Assembly: GCA_964247055.1 (NCBI GenBank)
Contig: OZ176054.1
Location: 8,742,001-8,806,000 of the forward strand
Reading direction: 5' to 3'
Length of the DNA stretch: 64,000 nt
Origin: Paragordius varius
Lineage: Eukaryota > Animalia > Nematomorpha
Part shown: in pieces, positions 3,001 to 63,545 of the stretch
Position numbering within the stretch: the first letter of the stretch is position 1
How the letters are laid out: each line of letters opens with the position of its first letter
Translations under genes and position numbers: made by a program
Notes under the pieces: generated by a model
What the model saw: only the letters and a program-made list of their open reading frames with translations
Database searches by the model: none
Told to the model about the DNA's origin: nothing

Positions 3001-6000
3001 TACACCATATAATTGATTTTCTTTTGATTAATATTGAGGTTGATTATAGCACAATAATAAATTATAAATGTTATATTAGTTAAACCATTTATAAAAGGAA
3101 TTTACGATTGCTATGTAAATATTTTTGCAGTTGTTCTAAATTATAAAATTTTTAATGAACTAAAAAAAGAAATATAAATTTTATTCAACGAATAATTAGA
3201 AGCATGCATTATATATATAATTAATAGGCAGAGACGGAGTAACAAATTAGATAAAATATTTATTACCATTTTAATTCCATTGTGTAAATTTACCCTAAAA
3301 ATATTACTATAAAATATACAATATAATATAAATGTTAGATATGATGCAGAACAACCATTGTCCATGACTCAAAAATTTGACGATTTATGCATATTCCTTA
3401 ACTCATGCCTAAAGGTGTATGAAAATGAATCATCAAAACATCCCCGTGTTAGCCATGATTCTTTCTCCCTACAAATCTTTTTACATAATTTAATAAGCCA
3501 ACAATTACACATGAGTGCAATGAAACAAATTTCAAACAATAACCCTGATATATTAGAAAGAGATGGGATTATAATACAAGCTCTTACTTACATAAGTGGT
3601 AGGGCAGGACATCAGGATTGGAAAAACATTGTAACGGCTAAATTCCCTTCCTTATCCTATGTCCTAAAATTACTCAATACGTTTTATCAAATGGTTTCGA
3701 TTCAACAAATGCCAAAGTATCGAGAAATGCTTCAAAAACGGACAGATATAACGCCTTTCGGTATGACATATATATGTAAAATAACAATCCTTATGATGTA
3801 TTTTGCTGAATTTTTTAAGAGATGGTAATTAGTATAATAGATCAAATCATGTTTGTGAATATAATAAATTTCTTTATTCTATTTGATACTTTATTATAAT
3901 GATGTTACCACTGTAAACATATAAATTACATGGTATTATATATAATTTTAAACACATTAAAATCAGAAGTATTTTAAATTGCCTACATAAAAACTTAAGT
4001 ATGCATTGTTTTATATAAACATATTACAATATTTTATATAGTTTTGCCTGACATAACTCCTTTAATTAAATTGTTACATAAATTGGAACAAGCCTCAACA
4101 GAAGATAGATTGGGTACTTTAGCTGAAACTTTAATGAACACGCTCCTTAAGAGTGATCCTTGTATGCAAACAAAGGTATAAAAAATCTAATTTTTCTTAC
4201 GTTATGGCTAAATTTCTCAATTAATATATCATTTACAGTTCAAATTCACCCTTAAACAATTCAAATTCACCCTTGAACAATTCAAATTCACCCTTGAACA
4301 ATTTAAATTCACCCTTTAACAATTAAAATTCACCTTCGAACAATTCAAATTCACCCTAAAATAAATTATGTATTTTTTAAGATTATATATTAATTATATT
4401 TTTTTATATTTTTTTAAAAAAAAATTTTGTATGTATTTAAAATAATACTGAAAAAATAATAAACTTTGTCATATAAATTATATTTAATTTTAATGATGAG
4501 TTATATTAGACAGAAATTTCATAATTTTTTTTAGGGTGAATTTGAATTGTTCGAGGGTGAATTTGAATTGTTCAAGGGTGAATTTGAATTGTTTAAGGGT
4601 GAATTTGAATTGTTCAAGGGTGAATTATTGTTTAAGGGTGAATTTGAACTGTAAATGGTATATTAACATGTGATTGGTATTGTTTTTAATTTTTTTTTAG
4701 ATTGAAAATATTCGAGAGCAAACTAAACACGATCGAAAAAAAATAGCAATGGCCAAACGTAATAAAAGACTTGAATCTCTTGGAATGAAAGTCATTAATT
4801 AATTAAAATCTAATATATTTTAAAAATTGAGTTTTGATATTTTTTGTCACGCATCTACTAAAGTATTATACATACAGTGAATCCCTCATAATGTCCCTAA
4901 TCGTGTGAGCTCGCTTAATATCCGCATTATATGGCTCTTTTTTAAATTTAAAAATATTTAACAAATTTTTCATTTTTATTATTATTATACGGGCATTAAA
5001 TAAATTTAAAAAATAATTTTTTAACCAATTTGGGCTTTTATATACTCACAAATTACTAAGTTAGTGGGAAGGTATATATATAACTTCAGTCAATTATATC
5101 CCAAAAACTACGACCTTAATCGTAAAAGTGTATGATAATCATTGTTTATAACGAAAGACTAATTACGGGGGTCATTTCAGGGGTCCACTGTATATAATGG
5201 GACAGGTTAATATTTTCAAAAAATTATACGGGCTTAGGTTTTGACAAATTTAATGATATATACAGTTTGATATTCAATATGTGTTGATTTATTCGCGAAA
5301 TATATAATATTCATTCAAACGTTGCATAATAGACAAACACTAAGGGTCAGGTCTTGGTATCAACCAAAATTGTGTCCCCTTTGTCAGAAGAAACTGGATT
5401 TGTATGCTGCATTTGCTTTGAGGGATATCATTTTCAACCAAACAAGGTTTGATTTTATGGGCTTTTTTTACGCAACATAGATTTATTAAATTTAGTTAAA
5501 TTAAATTTTGTTTGTGATAAAGGTTTTGGGGATCTATAATTTATTACGCAAAAATGAATGGATAAACCTTTCCCAAAGCACCAAACGTATGGCATTTATA
5601 AGTTTTTCGAATTTCAATCTTGTCCACATTGATTGCCATGCAGATTCTATCAAGTATATTAATATATTTGATAAAAAATTTGGTTTTTCCAAGATCGGAA
5701 CGGGAAACGTTTTTGCAGAACTGGAACCATTAACTTTTTTGAGACAGTTTTGGTGCTAAAAATATTTTTTTTAAAGTTTTATGTCAATATTGTTTGCTTT
5801 TTATTTAATGGTTATAATCCGTATATTTGCTGTTTAATGCTTATATTTTTGCTAATAAATTATTGTTGATATAATTAAGCTTTGAAACTCTAGGTAAAAG
5901 CATTTGACTAAGACAATAAATGAAACCATTTTTTCGCACAACAAAAATGAACTAAGACCGGAACCAAATATTCTCGCAAATATTGTTTGAGACCAAGTCC

Positions 6001-9000: not shown

Positions 9001-11022
9001 ATAAATCGAAATGTGTCGACATTCTATGCGTAATAAAAAATATATATTACTATTTTAAAATCTGTCAAACTAATTTTTAAAAGTTTGAATGAGAGGATGC
9101 ATTGAGCCATATTTTGATATACTAAAAATATACATTTTGATGATTTTATGGTTTATAAAAATTAGATAGAAAACATATTTCTTATATGTAGTTTATAAAT
9201 ACGATATTATATTTAAAAAATTGACTAATTTATTGTAGCATATTAATTAATGTGACCAGATATTTTGAACTTTGACGCAGTACAAAATTAAAACATACTT
9301 TGCCTGTTTTTACAACATCGGTGTGATATATTACAGTTTCCACAAAAAAATATCCTAGGAAAATATCAGGATTATCATGGTGCTTTTGGTTAACCTTTAC
9401 GAGTTATTAAAGAAAGTTTTTTACACTTTTGTGATAAGTGCTCCGTATAAAATTGCAAAAGGTGAGTAATTTTTTCAAACATATGTTTTGGTGAAAGCTA
9501 AATGCCTTTTTTAAAAGATATCACTAAAATATTATATAAACTACACATAAAAAGCAAAACAATATTTTTAAAAATTTTAAATTGTTAGATGTGGGTTCTG
9601 AAAGTCTGAATTTTTTTGGCTCTTTCAAAATGGACTGTTTTAAAAACGCAAAAATTCCGACATTGTGTAATAATTTTAAATATATGCAAAATTTTGATAT
9701 GGGCTAAATATATTAATGCATACTTTCAAAATTTAATTTTTAGTGGTATTTTGTTGAAGCGCACTTCCTATTTTGTGCATGATGGAAACGATATAAACGG
9801 TTGAGATGTTATACCATTTATATATATGATTCGATAATGCTAAACATTTTTCTCACTCAGAATTGAGATACTCGTTAGTTTTCTGTTATATAAAAATTGT
9901 CTTTTACAAAATTTCTCCAAAATTTGCTAGCAAACGAACCTTTAAGTTAAAATTCTTTACCTATTATACCTATTCGATCATGCTTAAAATAGTTTAAAGT
10001 ACGCTTCAACAAAACATCCCGAATTTATTTAATCAAAAAAATAAGAAAATAAAAATTAAAGTTTAGGAAAAAAAATTAAGAAATATTATAACTCCCACCT
10101 AATGAGTATAGACGTAAAAACTATTTATTTTTTAAATACAAAAAAAGTTATTTCGTAATCATGTGCCATATATAATAAATTTTATATAATATGTTACGGG
10201 AATAACAATTTTCCGTTTGATATTATAACAAAAAAACTTTCTAAACCTGATCGATTTATTAAAATATAATAAATTAATTTTGCTAATTTAAATTTTGAAG
10301 CACCTCTTTTTGCGGAAGCCCTGAGTAAAAGAGCCATTAGCCTGAATCTTACGGTTGAGTCCGCGATTTATAGTTTCGCCACTGCAGGCTACAATCTTAA
10401 GCGGTTTGACCGATCCAAAACCCAAATTTATAGTTTTTTCCGCAAAATAAACATTTCTTTACAAATTATGTGGTTATTTTTAAAGAGAGTATTAAATTAA
10501 ATTCTAAAATATTTTTTTCGAATAAATAAAAGGATAAAATATTATTTTTCATTTCAAAAAGCAGTACAAAAGTGGGCGCAGTACAGGCGCAGCTTTTTTC
10601 TGAAAACTCAGTACTGTACTGCGAAATACAGCCTATCTGGTCACATTAATATTAATGATAGATAGACGCCAAATTATTAATTATAATTGATAATTCTGTA
10701 TCTATATAGATTTATAAGGAAATTAGTTTTTATATTTACCATTTTATTGTAGGATGCCATAGAAGATGGAGTGCTTTGGCTTTTCGCTTTAAGCAAGTAT
10801 TTGCAAAATAACGATGAACAAATCATTAAAAAGTGTCAGAATTTATTAGTTTTATTTGATAAATGGGTAACTGCAAAGTCTGTGGACAACATTTATTCAA
10901 CGCCAAAGGGTAAGTTAATTTATATAGTAAAAATGTTAGCCAAATATAATATATCCCAATTTTCCATTGTAGATTTCATTGACAACACAAAGAAGCTCTT
11001 AGAAAATTTTCCGAATACATAA
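59..11022 (+). CDS. UBR4: E3 ubiquitin ligase UBR4/p600, C-terminal portion (5' part lies outside the window), multi-exon
   Basis: Spliced translation matches recalled UBR4 C-terminal motifs: EDFIQ|[24 protein letters not shown]; [19 protein letters not shown]; [18 protein letters not shown]; [22 protein letters not shown]; [14 protein letters not shown]|VLGIY; [10 protein letters not shown]; [22 protein letters not shown]; [13 protein letters not shown] exons read: 59-384, 744-917, 1429-~1680, (1680-2113 unresolved), 2114-2333, 2589-2706, 2789-2973, 3339-3760, 4042-4175, 4701-4790, 5333-5446, 5523-5653, 6083-6208, 6307-6501, 6759-7130, 7229-7319, 10753-10909, 10973-11022 (TAA). Confidence 0.93.
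4225..4662. mobile_element. Foldback-like TIR element with 21-bp tandem repeats in both arms, in a UBR4 intron
   Basis: Left arm has ~6 copies of ttcaaattcacccttgaacaa and the right arm carries the reverse complement. Termini are tatatcatttacag / ctgtaaatggtata, TA-flanked, with an AT-rich ~150-bp centre. Confidence 0.85.
4875..5190. mobile_element. Tc1/mariner-type MITE
   Basis: Imperfect TIRs cagtgaatccctcataatg / catttcaggggtccactg, with TA on both sides (4873-74, 5191-92). Confidence 0.7.
7387..8921. mobile_element. Non-autonomous hAT element (probably with nested repeats) in the 3.4-kb UBR4 intron
   Basis: TIRs caagtgtcggcaacct / aggttgcccacccctg. Flanks tatcaatc and tattaatt match at 6/8, consistent with a decayed 8-bp TSD. 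Confidence 0.6.
9248..10648. mobile_element. Non-autonomous hAT element
   Basis: TIRs taatgtgaccagata / tatctggtcacatta. Identical 8-bp flanks atattaat at 9240-9247 and 10649-10656. Confidence 0.75.
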
Positions 11023-11044
11023 TATAGTGCAATTTATTAGATTC

Positions 11045-11065
11045 AATAAATGTCGTACATTTATT
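11045..11065. terminator. Opposed polyadenylation signals between UBR4 and RPS29
   Basis: AATAAA on + at 11045-11050 (23 nt after the UBR4 stop) and on - at 11065-11060 (28 nt after the RPS29 stop). A further - strand AATAAA lies at 11038-11033. Confidence 0.5.
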
Positions 11066-11092: not shown

Positions 11093-11284
11093 TTAATCAA
11101 GCTAAAATTAATATGGTAATACCTTCACAAATCCAATATCATTTGCGTATTGTTTGAAACATTTTCTACACAAATTTAATCCATATTTTCGAATTAATCC
11201 ATGAGGATTTGCGCACGCTCTACATTCTCTCGATCCTTTTCCAAACTTTCTTGGGTGGCTATACCAAATTTTATTTAGTCCCAT
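11093..11284 (-). CDS. RPS29: 40S ribosomal protein S29 (uS14); exons 11284-11123 and 11101-11093; 21-nt intron
   Basis: Translation [54 protein letters not shown]|LD* has the CxxC...CxxC zinc motif and the canonical GFxKLD end. Too short for the ORF track. Confidence 0.96.
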
Positions 11285-11530
11285 GTGTAAATTATCGGAA
11301 ACACTTTATAACACAAGGTATATTAAAAGATTTTTATTTTAAATTTTAGTTTTGTATAGTAACACAAAGAACATCCGCTATTATAAGACTTAAATAAATA
11401 CCAAATTAAAATAGTAGGTACCCGCGATTTTTTTACTAAATACTGTCTTAATTTATTATATATGCTTCGCTCCAAATAAAATAATTAATGTTGCATGATT
11501 TGGCGTACTATATCTTATAGGAAATATTAA

Positions 11531-12112
11531 CACTTCGATTCAAATTGGGGTATATAAATACCCCAGACTTAATTTAAATTAATATTTTTAAAAAACTACT
11601 GAAGAAAATGGTCCCAATTTAAATTTATGCTTCTATTCTAATAAATATTATATAAATATGCCAAAATATCTTGATAAAATTTTGTTTTGAAAAAATAGCT
11701 CCATCTCAAACTACTTCGACGCCATTTTTATTTTACAAAATTTTTGCAAAATATCGTCTTTATTTAATTATAAGGCTAAAACTAAAGCTAATTTTTTATA
11801 TAAATTACATCTAACATTGATAGAAATAGAAAAAGCGGTTTAGTTTGTATAATTTTTCAATTTTACAATTTGACACATGTCACGTTGACGAAATTTTTAC
11901 CTTTCGGTTTTAGCTTAAAATGTGTAATATCAAGTATTTTTGAATAAAATTTTTTATATATTTCGGTTTATTAATGTTATATAAGTGCAAAATTTTGCCA
12001 TGGTTTCGATTCCTTCCATACTTTTTAAAGTATTTGATTTTAAACAGGCCTGGGGTATCCAACTACCCCAATTTTAATCGAAGGACTAAAATGAGTGTGT
12101 TGAATCCAAGTG
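11531..12112 (+). mobile_element. TTAA-specific MITE (~580 bp), piggyBac-like, full-length copy
   Basis: TTAA on both sides (11527-30, 12113-16). Ends cacttcgattcaa / ttgaatccaagtg. A 20-bp inner IR (cttcgattcaaattggggta) starts 2 nt from the left end but lies 29 nt inside the right end. Confidence 0.85.
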
Positions 12113-15100: not shown

Positions 15101-17361
15101 GGGTCGCGACCCCATTTGGGGTCGCGAGTGATAAAAATACAATTTAACAAAGAATGTTTTTTAACTTGTAAAATTATTGTTATAAAAAAATAACAATTTT
15201 TGTATATATATATATATATATATAATATAAAAACATCTGGTTCCGAAAAACTGTTTATACCAGCATTTCTCTTCCGAACATAGCTATTTCACATGTTTTA
15301 ATAAAGATTGAAGAAAAGATTGTCTTTGATAACGTCTTTTGTGAAAAAACAATTATATTTGCTCTTCTAGTTTTAATTTGTCAGTGCCCTGTGTAACGAT
15401 TTTAGTTTTCTTTTTATTCGGTAATTAATAATCAAATATAATCTGCAATTGTTATTTTTATATATTTATTGTATTTTAGGATAAAAATAATTTTTGCCCA
15501 TGGATAAATGGCTGTTAAATAATGACGCATATATTAATCCAACAAATTCTTCTCAGTCAGGACAAAGTATTGGAAAAGAGACATCTAATGTGCGAAAAAG
15601 AAAATATGATGAGTCTTTTCTTCAATTTAGCTTCACATTTCAAAATTGTAATGGTAAACAACCTCTTTCTTTGATATCCAATAATTTATTGGCTTCGGAG
15701 AGTATGAAACCATCAAAATTAAGAAGACATTTTTAATCAAAACATGTTTCGTATGTCAATTAACCTAAAGAATATTTTGAAAAACTGTGTATATCAAATC
15801 AAGAAAAACATCTAAAAAATTATCACCGTTAATGAAAAATGTTTACTAGCATCTTATGAAGTCATACTGTATTGCTAAAAATAAAAAGCCGTTTACCATT
15901 GGCGAAGATCTTGTGTTACCTGCAGCTATTATAATGGTAGAAATACCCATGGAAAAAAATATGGCGATGATATTCGAAAAATTCCTTTGTCAAACGACAC
16001 TAAATAGAATTTCTGATATTAAGAAGGATCAATTAATACAACTTATGACAAGAAAGAAAGCCCAAAATTTTCGCTTCAGTTTGACGAAACAACTGATATT
16101 ACTAAATTGGCTCAGTTGTCAAGTACGTTTAAAAGAAAGCGTGGAGGAAGAATTGTTATTTTGTTGTCCTATGGAAGACCATACTACAGGGAAAGACATA
16201 TATCGTAAAGTGGATGAATTTTTTAAAGCAGGAGGTTTAGAATAGAATTGCTGTGGAATATGCACAGATGGTGCAAGAGCGACGACGGCAAAAATATCTA
16301 TTTTAAATCATTAAGCTGCTCATTATGATCATATAACTTTTACTCATTGCCTTATTCACCAAGAGGCTCTTGCAGCAAAAATAATAGCACCAGAATCTAA
16401 CGATGTGCTTCAGGATGCTGTTAAGGTCATAAATTTTATTAAGAGCCATGCCCTTAACATTCGCTTATACTCAAATCTCTGTAAGGATACGGATTCTAAC
16501 TACACAACTTTGTTATTACATGTAGAAGTAAGATGGTTGTCAAGAGGTCAAAGATTATTATTATTATTAAAGCACGAGATCGAAATATTTTTAACTGATC
16601 CAAAATGTGAATTTGCTGCTTTTCTTCAAAATGACTTGTGGCTATCCAAGCTCTGTTATTTGTCAGATATTTTTGCGAAGTTAAACGATCTTAACTTGTC
16701 TCTTCAAGGAAAAGATTGCGATATATTTACTTCAAACGATATTGAAAGTTTTATTAAAAAGATCAGCATTTGGAAAAGTAGAGTCGAAAAAAATTCGTTC
16801 AAATGTTTTCCAATGTCGACAATTTTCTAATTGAAAAAATTTGTAAAAGTTTTATTACAAAAACTATTATAAATCATTTAAAAGCGTTAGAAATAAAATT
16901 TCGGGCAAACTTTATCGAAAATATTGATTTACAAAAAATAGTTTGGATTCAAAAGCCGTTTTGGTTTGGCTTAAGTGAGAATGATCATTTGCCACTTAAA
17001 GCTCAAGAGGAATTTGCTGAGCTCTCGTGTGGCTTAAACTTAAAACTAGAATTCCAACAAAAGTCCTTGACTGAATTCTGGATCGGAACTAGAACTGAAT
17101 TTCCCACAATCGCCGATATGGCCTTAAATGTACTTCTGCCATTCCTCACCACATATTTATGTGAAGTACTTTCTCAGCTTTAACACACATTAAATCCCAA
17201 TATCGTTCAGTGATAAAAAATGTTGAAGAGGTCTTACGTCCAGCAGTTTCAAACATTAAACCAAGATTTGAATTGTTATGCAATAAAAAACATCGTACAT
17301 CTCATTAAACTTTAAAGTAATTTTAATTTAATAATTACCACGCATCTACTTGGATATATTC

Positions 17362-21964: not shown

Positions 21965-22429
21965 ATGGAAGAAAAACACCCTGATGATTTTCCCATAGAT
22001 TTGGAATTTTTAAAGAATTTGGATAATGAAACCCATAAAATATCGGAAGACATAAATAAACTTAATGATATATTAAAGAATGATATAGCCAAAGTAAATT
22101 TATTTTAATCCATAGATAACTAATACAACTCAAGATTCATATCAGGTTTATCATGATGGAGCCGTTGACGCATGTAATTCCATCGACTCTCTATAAAAAC
22201 AATGTATGGAATGATGGCCAAAATGGAGGAATTAACTAAGTCTATGGAACCAATTGGTAGGCTTGCTTTAGAAGCTAAAGAAATTCGTAAAATGATAGAT
22301 TTATGCGAACGTAAATTAAATCAAAAAGAATCGTCAAAAAAAGAGAATAATGATGTCAAAAATGAGGAAACAATATTTCATCCATGCCCAACATTTATTA
22401 ATAAAGAGAGTAAAAATGATAGTGACTAA
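21965..22429 (+). CDS. BORCS6: BLOC-1-related complex subunit 6 (lyspersin, C17orf59/DUF2365); exons 21965-22093 and 22116-22429; 22-nt intron; one apparent 1-nt deletion near 22190
   Basis: Translation ...ISEDINKLNDILKNDIAK|ITNTTQDSYQVYHDGAVDACNSIDS[frameshift]IKTMYGMMAKMEELTKSMEPIGRLALEAKEIRKMIDLCE matches the recalled BORCS6 motif (YRDSVD...VDMSIKGMYTLMARCEELDRSMQPI..LA..IRDIKR.LD). Confidence 0.85.
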
Positions 22430-59429: not shown

Positions 59430-62400
59430 ATACTAATAATTTGAACAATTCAAAAACAATTTATTGTTATATATCATGAAAAATGATTGTTTATATAGAT
59501 TATTTTCATCGATTCGTGGGACAGAACACGGAAATGAATATAATATTATTGTAATGCATTTAAGTATAAAACAATTTGTTGAAACATGACGCATGAGTTA
59601 TTTGAAATGTTATTTATAAAACAATTCATCGAATCATGATGACGCACGTGTCAAATGTTATTGTGTAATAAAAAAGTGCACAAATATTATAACATATCAT
59701 TTCCCCTCGCTTTAGGAAAATCGATCAGGGGCTTTACGTTCTCTGAGAGGATAACGTCTTTCTTGTCTTTCAGAAGTTGTTTTCGGCTCATTAACTACAT
59801 CCGCTGCATCTGTGATTTTTTCTGGTAAATTACTGTCAAGTGGGACCTCAACCGACTTTTTCAATTATTCTGTTTTCGTTGAATTTTATTACCACATCTG
59901 TCTGGTAGGATAACAATCTAGTTCTATCAATAACTTTCCCTTTCTTCCATCCCATTGATGTTTCATTTTTTATTAAAATCGGTTCACAACTGACAAATTC
60001 CCGCAAAGGAGCATTGGTACTATAATCAGTGAAATCTGATTGTACGGTTTGTAACCACGATAAAGGAGTACAAATCTCTCTTTTTTGTAATGAACAAGGG
60101 GTTACCTTGGTGGCACTATGAATTGCTATTCGATAACTCCATAGAATAGTGTTTATAGTTTCTTGCGGATGCAAGTCAGCACGCTTTGTAGCTTTGTATT
60201 TGGTTTTAAGAGTATAAATTGATCGCTCCACCAAGCCATTCGTACGAGGATGATAAGGACTAGACGTGACATATTTAATATTTAAATGTTTTAATCTGTC
60301 CTCAAATTCGTAAGAAACAAAATATGTTGCATTGTCGCTTACTAATATTTTGGGAAAACCAAATCTAGCAAACAATTTTTCTAAACACTCTAAAATTGCC
60401 TTGCTTGTGACTTGTTTTATTGAATCAACTTCCACCCATCAAAAGCTGTCAATTGTTACTAACCAGTAAAACCCATCAATAGGACCTGCAATATCAATAT
60501 GAATTCTTTCCCATATGGCGGTATTGAAATTCCATTTGTACGTAGGGTTTACCTGGATGTTGGGCTTATACCTTTGAAATTCGTCACATGTTTAAGCAAA
60601 TAATTTTTTGGTCCAAATTCGGCCAATATACAGTGTGACGCGCGAGGGATTTCATGGTATTTATCCCCGGGTGCCCAGTATGAAGAAAATCAAGAATTTC
60701 TGTTTGCAATGAATTGGGAACTACTAGTCTGTCTTCCAAATAAACTAAGCCATATGATGTTTGAAGAAAGTTTCGAGGTGATTGGTAATCTTTAGGATCT
60801 GGATCATCCCAATTGTTGGAATTTAATGCAATTTTTAATTTTGGAATAATAGAATCCTTGTTACATAGGTTAATAACATGCTTTTTATTGATGTTAAAAT
60901 TGCTCATCGATAAAAACCGAATTTTTTTAGCTACTATATCATCATCGTCTACTTCGGAATCTGATTTTATTGCTAATCTAGATAAAGGGTTGGCTAAATT
61001 CTGAACTCCTTTATTAAATTCAATTGTGTAATCATAGCCCGATATTTTATAGATCCATCGTAGTAATTTTATGTTGGTTACCCCGGCTAAATTTCTATTT
61101 TCCCCAACTAATTTAATCAAGGGTTTGTGATCCGTCAAATAAATGATCTTCCATATATGAAAGAATGGAATTTTTGCACAGCGAATAAAATCGCTTTTGC
61201 TTCCCTTTCAATGGTAGAATAATGTTTTTCAAAATTTAAACATTTTATTGATGCGTAACAAATGGGTCGTTTGCCTTCATCTGTTACGTGGAATAGAATA
61301 GCTCCTAAACCTTCCATCGAAGCATCAGTTTCTATTAATAATGTCCCGGATTATATGGAATCAATTCTACAAAGTTAGATATTAGTTGTTTCGATAGCGA
61401 AAATTGTTTATCATGTATGTCCTCCCATTTCCAGGGCTTTTTGTTTCCAGTCAATGTGTGTAAAGCACTAATGACTGGATGTAATCTGGGTATGAATTTC
61501 TCATGAAAGCTTAGTAATCCCAAATAAAAACGTAATGTTGTTTTATCCTTAGGAACCGGGCAGTCTAAAATTGATTTGATTTTCTTATTTGTGGGTCTAA
61601 TACCCTTTCGAGATATTTCGTAGCCCATGTAGAATACTTTTTCCTTAAAAATTTTTATTTTATCTAGTTGCAAGCGGAATCCGGCATGTTCAAGTTTTTT
61701 TCAAAACAAGCTCAAGATTTGCTTTGTGTTGCATATCTGTATCGCCCGTTATTAAAACGTCATCTAGGTATGCACATCCTGGGCAATCATCCAGAATTTG
61801 ATCCATAATACGTTAATATCATCGGAGTATTTGTAAGCCCAAACGGTAGTCGTCTATAAGTAAAGTAGGCTCTGTGTGTAGTAATCGTTAGAATATCAGA
61901 GCTTTCCTTAGCAACAGGTAGCTGTAAGTAAGCATCCCTGAGATCTAAAACTGAGAATGAATGTCCATTTCCAATTTTACTCAATAGTTGATCAAATGTC
62001 GGAATTATATGGGAATCTTTGGATAAATATGGATTTATCGTTACACGATAATCAGCGCAAATGCGAACTTCCCCATTGGATTTCAAAACGTTGACAGTTG
62101 GTTGACCAACAAATTGGAGTTGTTGTTGGATCAACTGGTTCTATAATTGCTAAATCTAACAATCCGTCTAATTCGTTTTCTACCAATGGTTGTAATGAAA
62201 GAGGAACTCTTCGGCAAGGAAAACATTTTGGTTTTGCATCCGGAATCAGAAAGATTTTAATTGGATTTCCGTTGAAACAACCAAGTTCATTTGAAAGTTT
62301 TGGAAATCTGTTAATCAGATCCATATTATCATAATCAAAATTAATATTATAATTAACCTTTTGGAAATGGCAAATTGTAAGCTTTTATCCATGGTAATCC

Positions 62401-63545
62401 AAAAATCGGATCGAAATATCCTTTTGTAACGACACATGGTAAAGTTATTTGTTTGTGAAACGTCACATTAACCATCTCCCCATAATGGGAATCTTATTAT
62501 TGTCATATGTGGTAATTTGATCGGACCACGTTAATTTGGGACAACCAATCTGCCTCCATATTTGTTGATTTATGAACAGTCAGAAGTGTCGAAAAACCAT
62601 AATTCTAGGGGTAGTGCCCGCTTTTATAGATCTAATTTGATCTAAATTTCTTACCAACTTTGTTTTGCACATTGAACTAAAGTGGTTAAAGTTGTTATAT
62701 TTGTAACAATTTTCCAAGCAGGGCATTTGTTCTTTAGAGACAATTCACAATTGGGACAATTAATTTTGTCATTATTATTGTACTTTTCCTTTTTATTATT
62801 ATGATCTTTGCTGACCTTTACTTTATTCACAGTGGCTGATAAATTCTCAGCTTCCTCAAAACTGAGGGTAGGTCAACTAACATTTGTAAAGTTAATGGTG
62901 TTTCACCCATTTTGCCTAAGGGATATAACGTGTAGCTCTCTTTCCAATCTTGGTTAGTTGAATGAGGCCTACAATAAACATAACTCTTATCTTGTTGGAA
63001 ATATCAGAATCAAAACCTGCATTATCAGCTAGGATTTTTAATCTTTCCAAATACGACAAAAACGGTTCATTTTCCCCTCGACGAATACGATAAAATTCGG
63101 ACCGGTTAATCCATAAGCTTTTATCCGGCGCATATATCTGGACCGCTATTTTAAAGATCTCTGGCCATTCTAGAGCATCTATGTTGTCCGGATATAATAT
63201 GTTTTCAATTTTGTTCAAAATTTTTATTCCACCAAATGCAAGGAACAATTTTTTCACGGCATCATTAGTGATCGGTATGTCTCTGGCTAGTGAAAGCAGG
63301 ATTGGCACCCACACATAATTGGTATGTCTCATCAACAAAAAGAAACGTTCGATGTGCTTGACGTAATTTTTGAAATTCAATGATTCATCAAAAGGCTCCA
63401 GAACTATCCGATTTATGGGGTTTTGTGCATTATTAAATGTGAATTTGGAATCTTCCATGTAAGGAATAATTTTCCTCGTCGCCAATAATATTTTGAACAA
63501 TACAAAAACAATTTATTGTTATACAGTAGCGTATGCAGTAAAAGA
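59430..63545 (-). mobile_element. Ty3/Gypsy LTR retrotransposon (Mag/K02A2.6-like), degenerate
   Basis: Order on the - strand: PBS-like TGGCGACGAGG (63484-63474); gag from ATG 63458 with a decayed Cys knuckle near 62680-62760; protease remnant; RT (ICADYR, LDLRDAY, YLDD, FYMGY); RNase H (EREAKAI, TDHKPL); integrase (HTGHPG, HIDIAGP, VSDNA, HPRTNGLVER); PPT aaagcgaggggaaa followed by TG at 59699. Many stops and frameshifts. Confidence 0.92.

Follow-up and report, generated by a model that had tools for sequence, protein, structure and literature searches.

Very short spliceosomal introns are best known from unicellular eukaryotes: those of Paramecium are about 20–30 nt long and those of chlorarachniophyte nucleomorphs 18–21 nt, and in Paramecium introns with a length divisible by three (3n) are known to carry in-frame stop codons. 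Animals, to our knowledge, were for a long time believed to lack introns shorter than about 30 nt. Introns of 15–16 nt are on record for Stentor (cited in PMC13644364), and among 51 genomes animal introns of less than 30 bp were found only in the Myxobolidae and in Dicyema, where the 5′ site is reduced to GTa (Hadjez et al. 2026, PMC13644364). In the literature that we found, these myxobolids and dicyemids are the only animals for which introns below 30 bp are reported, and our search for literature linking hairworms with short introns returned none.

The micro-introns that we describe here in the horsehair worm Paragordius varius share much with these systems. Those of myxobolids and Dicyema japonicum are also GT-AG introns, of about 20–29 nt, which lie at conserved positions between conserved ribosomal-protein exons (RPS13 is the example given in PMC13644364), and as in P. 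varius their 5′ site is reduced to GTa or GTw and A residues occur a few nucleotides ahead of the AG. The settings differ, however. Myxobolid and dicyemid genomes are compact and fast-evolving and a tiny intron is their median intron, whereas P. varius, with ribosomal proteins that appear to be well conserved and DNA that we judge to be rich in transposons, carries its tiny introns beside introns of 67–341 nt in the same genes. The 3′ site of the P. varius micro-introns also retains a T-rich run, unlike that of the myxobolid and dicyemid introns, and whereas the latter are supported by Iso-Seq (PMC13644364) the P. varius micro-introns are known here from DNA sequence. The introns of ciliates (Paramecium, Stentor) and of nucleomorphs fall into the same size class, but these ciliates and the chlorarachniophyte nucleomorphs represent unicellular systems whose introns are almost all tiny, while P. 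varius is an animal with two classes of intron length.

Results

A candidate 21-nt intron near the end of RPS29

The RPS29 (uS14/eS29) gene is located on the minus strand of the window, by which we mean the whole 64-kb stretch of DNA that was analysed. Its first coding exon (11123..11284, minus; ATG at 11284–11282) comprises 54 codons, M1 to K54, and ends in ...DIGFVK. There follow a candidate 21-nt GT-AG intron in phase 0 between K54 and L55 (11102..11122, minus; gtattaccatattaattttag) and a terminal mini-exon, CTT GAT TAA, which specifies L55, D56 and the stop codon (11093..11101, minus). Exon 1 matches the Pfam family Ribosomal_S14 (PF00253, S14p/S29e) with 46.9 bits (E = 2.2e-12; curated cut-off 27) and contains the zinc-knuckle cysteines of the CxxC...CxxC arrangement (C21, C24, C39 and C42). 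A word-based protein search with exon 1 gave 76–78% identity with arthropod RPS29; it returned no hairworm sequence and no identical protein, the top match being at 78% (arthropods). An Rfam scan of the 64-kb window produced no match.

Conceptual translation with the 21 nt excised gives an RPS29 of 56 amino acids (54 + 2) with the canonical KLD end, which is also the C-terminus of the animal RPS29 homologues that we retrieved. The original prediction, that 21 nt separate GFVK from CTT GAT TAA and that removing this GT...AG stretch restores the canonical ending, is exact in its sequence and coordinates and agrees with these homologues. With the 21 nt kept, the frame continues through GFVKVLPY to a TAA at 11110–11108, giving a 58-amino-acid open reading frame, just as had been anticipated for a retained intron. 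An exact look-up of this unspliced reading frame found no record, a result that is uninformative. The 21 nt are a multiple of three and retention alters only the last two residues, so that even an unspliced mRNA would yield a near-complete protein; for this reason the frame by itself does not strictly require splicing.

A class of micro-introns in other genes

Test genes were located in the same assembly with Pfam profiles. Their junctions were anchored on conserved peptides and every GT-AG solution was enumerated; a junction was kept only if there was a single solution or if conserved sequence chose among the candidates. Six genes yielded 20 obligatory GT-AG micro-introns of 23–29 nt whose removal restores the conserved proteins, and for each of them no other GT-AG pair achieves this. 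Eight of them are in RPL3 (28, 24, 24, 26, 29, 26, 26 and 24 nt), four in RPS6 (23, 25, 27 and 23 nt) and two in RPL15 (23 and 25 nt), with no ordinary introns listed for these three genes. The remainder are in RPS8 (25 and 27 nt, with ordinary introns of 70 and 142 nt), RPL13 (24 and 25 nt, with one ordinary intron of 341 nt) and RPS3A (23 and 24 nt, with ordinary introns of 67, 125 and 128 nt). RPL3 thus appears to have micro-introns only, and RPS8, RPL13 and RPS3A mix theirs with introns of 67–341 nt. Four further micro-introns, of 22, 23, 23 and 23 nt, were found within the 64-kb window, bringing the verified set to 24 (20 in ribosomal-protein genes and four in the window), with a range of 22–29 nt and a mode of 23–24 nt. 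At 21 nt the RPS29 candidate is the shortest of all, one base under the shortest verified micro-intron (22 nt).

The verified micro-introns have a 5′ site cut down to GTW, a T-rich 3′ end followed by WAG, and an interior with about 8% G+C. Many of those in ribosomal-protein genes contain stop codons or shift the frame and, since these genes are essential, must be removed. Every other verified micro-intron of 3n length (7 of 7) contains an in-frame stop codon and the RPS29 candidate makes this 8 of 8, a pattern like that of Paramecium for which shuffling gives a joint chance of about 0.03.

Splice signals and the mini-exon

The RPS29 21-mer begins with a reduced 5′ site, GTATTA, and ends in TTTTAG. 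Within it is a TTAAT of the YTRAY type, with its A at +15 and 6 nt from the 3′ end, and a TTTT directly ahead of the AG. A YTRAY with its A 6–9 nt from the 3′ end is present in about 10 of 25 micro-introns, and such motifs arise easily at about 90% A+T. The interior G+C of the 21-mer is 12%, against a micro-intron mean of 8%. Its splice-site score is 12.2 bits, compared with 5.8–15.5 bits for 22 verified micro-introns each left out in turn, which places it in the upper half of the verified set; as high a score is reached by 4 of the 208 GT-N17-AG 21-mers in the window (about 2%). A 27-nt alternative that begins at the GT of the Val53 codon and leads to ...GFLD was rejected. It loses the conserved VK, and its third intron position is a G, which is unseen in the verified micro-introns.

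The motif that the mini-exon forms is rare. Among the 128,000 positions of the window (both strands), the 11-mer AG + Leu + Asp + stop has two occurrences, one of which is the RPS29 site. It is the sole such site up to 5 kb downstream of the donor, and within 3 kb downstream no other match was found even to a looser pattern of AG + [LFYMIV][DRQENK] + stop. The chance that AG + Leu + Asp + stop would fall 18–30 nt past a donor is about 1–2 in 10,000. There being no alternative LD-stop within 5 kb, and a convergent gene lying downstream, the conserved C-terminus of RPS29, if it exists, is encoded by the exon 21 nt away.

Intron positions in RPS29 genes of other taxa

Genomic loci of the retrieved RPS29 proteins were analysed by exact spliced mapping. 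An intron at CDS position 162|163, in phase 0 between K54 and L55 and followed by a mini-exon of 6 coding nucleotides plus the stop codon, was present in four other taxa mapped: the salmonid fish Salvelinus alpinus (243 nt, GC-AG), the horseshoe crab Tachypleus (211 nt), the springtail Orchesella (110 nt, two loci) and the fungus Blastocladiella (58 nt). Position and phase in all four are identical to those in P. varius, whereas the lengths, 58–243 nt, contrast with the 21 nt of the hairworm. Among the metazoans compared, the terminal intron is thus kept in fish, horseshoe crab and springtail, and by the same mapping the mite Leptotrombidium and the nematode Ditylenchus lack it altogether. A further intron, at 62|63 in phase 2, is found in all mapped taxa except Ditylenchus; it is retained in the four taxa that have the terminal intron but is missing from the P. 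varius gene. Several over-long public RPS29 models (from an ant, a pike, a horseshoe-crab isoform, Mitosporidium and an environmental contig) depart from the family exactly past GF[KV]K, and some of them go on with V, as though reading into the GT.

That the 162|163 intron is shared by three animals and a fungus argues that the terminal position is ancestral, older than the split between animals and fungi, and by the same comparison the other old intron (62|63) appears to have been lost in P. varius. The original prediction gave vertebrate RPS29 an intron at the terminal position, and the Salvelinus gene bears this out. The accompanying suggestion, that an ancestral intron had shrunk and not that a new one was gained, is strengthened by the same position in Tachypleus, Orchesella and Blastocladiella: with the position shared between orthologues, shrinkage is far more likely than gain.

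Copy number, alleles and genomic reads

RPS29 was found to be single copy when the entire 110.6-Mb assembly was searched in all six frames. DNA contigs from two public runs, X1 and X2 (one sample), carry the same RPS29 locus including the 21 nt, plus a second allele; the contigs of run X3 (a second sample) do not cover the gene. The contigs of the four public runs X1, X2, X3 and X5 are genomic DNA and run unbroken across intron and intergenic DNA, as DNA must. All six allelic differences within exon 1 are synonymous (five at third positions and one AGA to CGA), where random change would be expected to yield about 20% synonymous differences (P ~6e-5). The RPS29 gene is under purifying selection. 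There are no allelic differences in the 21 nt and the mini-exon, a stretch that is too short for this to have much meaning.

Very high-copy repeats are situated on either side of RPS29 (window 10300–10656 and 11524–11800). Their summed DNA contig depth is 1e5 to 5e6, against about 400 on unique DNA, and they contain many internal rearranged joints. A 310-nt contig from run X5 (organism B, another study) matches window 11232–11377 exactly over 146 nt, corresponding to the upstream region and the first 17 RPS29 codons, and then diverges within RPS29 exon 1. A chimeric unitig is one possible explanation, a rearranged copy in a relative another.

Neighbouring sequence and other observations

An AATAAA hexamer that is a possible polyadenylation signal is found 28 nt past the RPS29 stop codon (11060..11065, minus), and a second copy is at 11038–11033 (minus). 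At 26% G+C this hexamer is frequent by chance, and the two copies merely fit a short 3′ UTR and prove nothing. A convergent gene on the plus strand ends with a TAA at 11020–11022, 70 nt from the RPS29 stop. Between the two genes AATAAA is present on both strands (plus 11045–11050, minus 11065–11060), which suggests that the 3′ UTRs of RPS29 and the convergent gene overlap. An 18-nt GT...AG stretch in the last exon of the neighbouring gene (10910–10927, plus) was considered as an intron and rejected; it contains no stop, keeps the frame and looks coding, so there is no reason for such a call. In a BORCS6-like gene (window 22094–22200, plus), a second frame change occurs near 22180–22200, past a 22-nt intron, for which no GT-AG solution was seen.

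The G+C content of this DNA is about 27%, which resembles that of Gordionus montsenyensis (26.9%). Open reading frames at window 15494–17183 are presumably remnants of a hAT-type transposase; a Pfam search with them gave no match. A retroelement at window 59848–63500 has an integrase and a weak gag-like match. Elsewhere in the assembly, a second locus matching Ribosomal_S8e (C5:3841366–3842071) contains an internal stop and may be a paralogue or a pseudogene, the main RPS8 gene being on contig C4.

The mitochondrial contig (C44:5980–10320) contains zero-spacer palindromes of 262 and 194 nt. The 194-nt palindrome sits within a frame that is open under the invertebrate mitochondrial code and whose N-terminus resembles, as we take it, that of ATP6. 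Coding palindromes in mitochondrial DNA have been described as a hallmark of Nematomorpha (PMC6649704), and together with the base composition they support the assignment to horsehair worms; the apparent conservation of the ribosomal proteins and the transposon content would speak against a myxozoan or a dicyemid. A search with a piece of COX1 returned fragments of at most 79% identity and no named relative. On the same contig, 72-nt hairpin units are repeated in tandem ahead of COX1; the palindromes and this array together occupy positions 53–314, 770–1472 and 4064–4257 of the piece. A COX1-like fragment with several stops on a nuclear contig (C1:10612280–10612597) probably derives from mitochondrial DNA copied into the nucleus.

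Discussion

We consider it very likely, on the sequence comparisons above, that the stretch at 11122–11102 (minus) is a genuine U2-type GT-AG spliceosomal intron, in phase 0, in a single functional RPS29 gene, and the intron is probably constitutive. An ancient terminal RPS29 intron would have shrunk to the lower edge of the 21–29-nt micro-intron class of this genome. Its excision would join ...GFVK to the LD-stop and so produce the canonical 56-amino-acid RPS29, and the A at +15 in the TTAAT motif is a possible branch point. Spliceosomal removal of the 21-mer, and the efficiency of that removal, are both things that we infer.

The most serious competing explanation is that most or all transcripts keep the 21 nt. 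The intron would then have shrunk below the limit of the spliceosome and the protein would end in GFVKVLPY (58 amino acids), leaving the GT, AG and LD-stop as a recent relic; a milder form of this explanation envisages partial retention and two C-termini. It draws on the length, since 21 nt lies below the 22–29-nt range of the 24 verified micro-introns and could be under what this spliceosome handles well, and on the frame, which stays open for four codons before the stop and gives a product that lacks only LD. Very short introns can also splice inefficiently, those of microsporidia having a median splicing efficiency of about 25% (quoted in PMC13644364), and for this reason some retention of the RPS29 intron is possible. 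Against habitual retention, the GT, the AG, the Leu, the Asp and the stop codon are all intact at the exact ancestral junction (chance about 1e-4), the retrieved animal RPS29 proteins end in KLD, and the splice-site score is on a par with those of the obligatory micro-introns. In-frame stops are, moreover, the rule for 3n micro-introns at sites where retention would be lethal. In the seven others retention would wreck essential ribosomal proteins, so the stop in RPS29 gives no hint of a second isoform; it appears to be typical of its class and provides no evidence for a designed VLPY isoform. On balance we regard retention as the usual fate of these 21 nt as unlikely.

Two other alternatives were considered. 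If the true terminal exon lay elsewhere, past an intron of ordinary size such as the 58–243 nt seen at 162|163 in the other mapped taxa, then the LD-stop 21 nt away would be a coincidence. However, the scans downstream of the donor found no other AG + [LFYMIV][DRQENK] + stop within 3 kb and no other AG + LD + stop within 5 kb, and the downstream DNA is occupied by the 3′ end of the convergent gene, whose stop is at 11022. A distant exon is accordingly placed by us among the very improbable readings. Processed pseudogenes of RPS29 are common in other animals, and the locus might be a pseudogene or the product of misassembly (a spurious 21-nt insertion, for instance), with a working gene elsewhere. 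Nothing in the data was found to favour this. It is the only copy found by the six-frame search of the 110.6-Mb assembly, the 21 nt recur in independent DNA contigs from runs X1 and X2 of one sample, and the two alleles differ by synonymous changes only. We consider this last explanation to be the least probable of all.

If the RPS29 intron is indeed spliced, a 21-nt intron in an essential and highly expressed gene of an ecdysozoan would be a clean case of extreme shrinkage without loss, and would put a low limit on the intron size that an animal spliceosome can handle. Its position can be traced to the common ancestor of animals and fungi and is the best-documented ancestral position among the micro-introns. 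Since RPS29 is abundant in any RNA sample, the whole class could readily be tested on it. In practice, genes in these genomes will be broken or missed by gene finders and aligners that do not allow introns this short. The BUSCO score of Gordionus is 71.6%. As a tentative proposal, which we hold to be possible but doubtful, horsehair worms may have an abundant and unpublished class of introns of 21–29 nt beside ordinary and kilobase-long ones, concentrated in housekeeping genes and with RPS29 at its lower size limit. Common tools for gene prediction and completeness assessment do not model such lengths. On this proposal, annotation artefacts would explain some of the low BUSCO completeness, and some of the universal metazoan genes reported as missing from Nematomorpha would not really have been lost.
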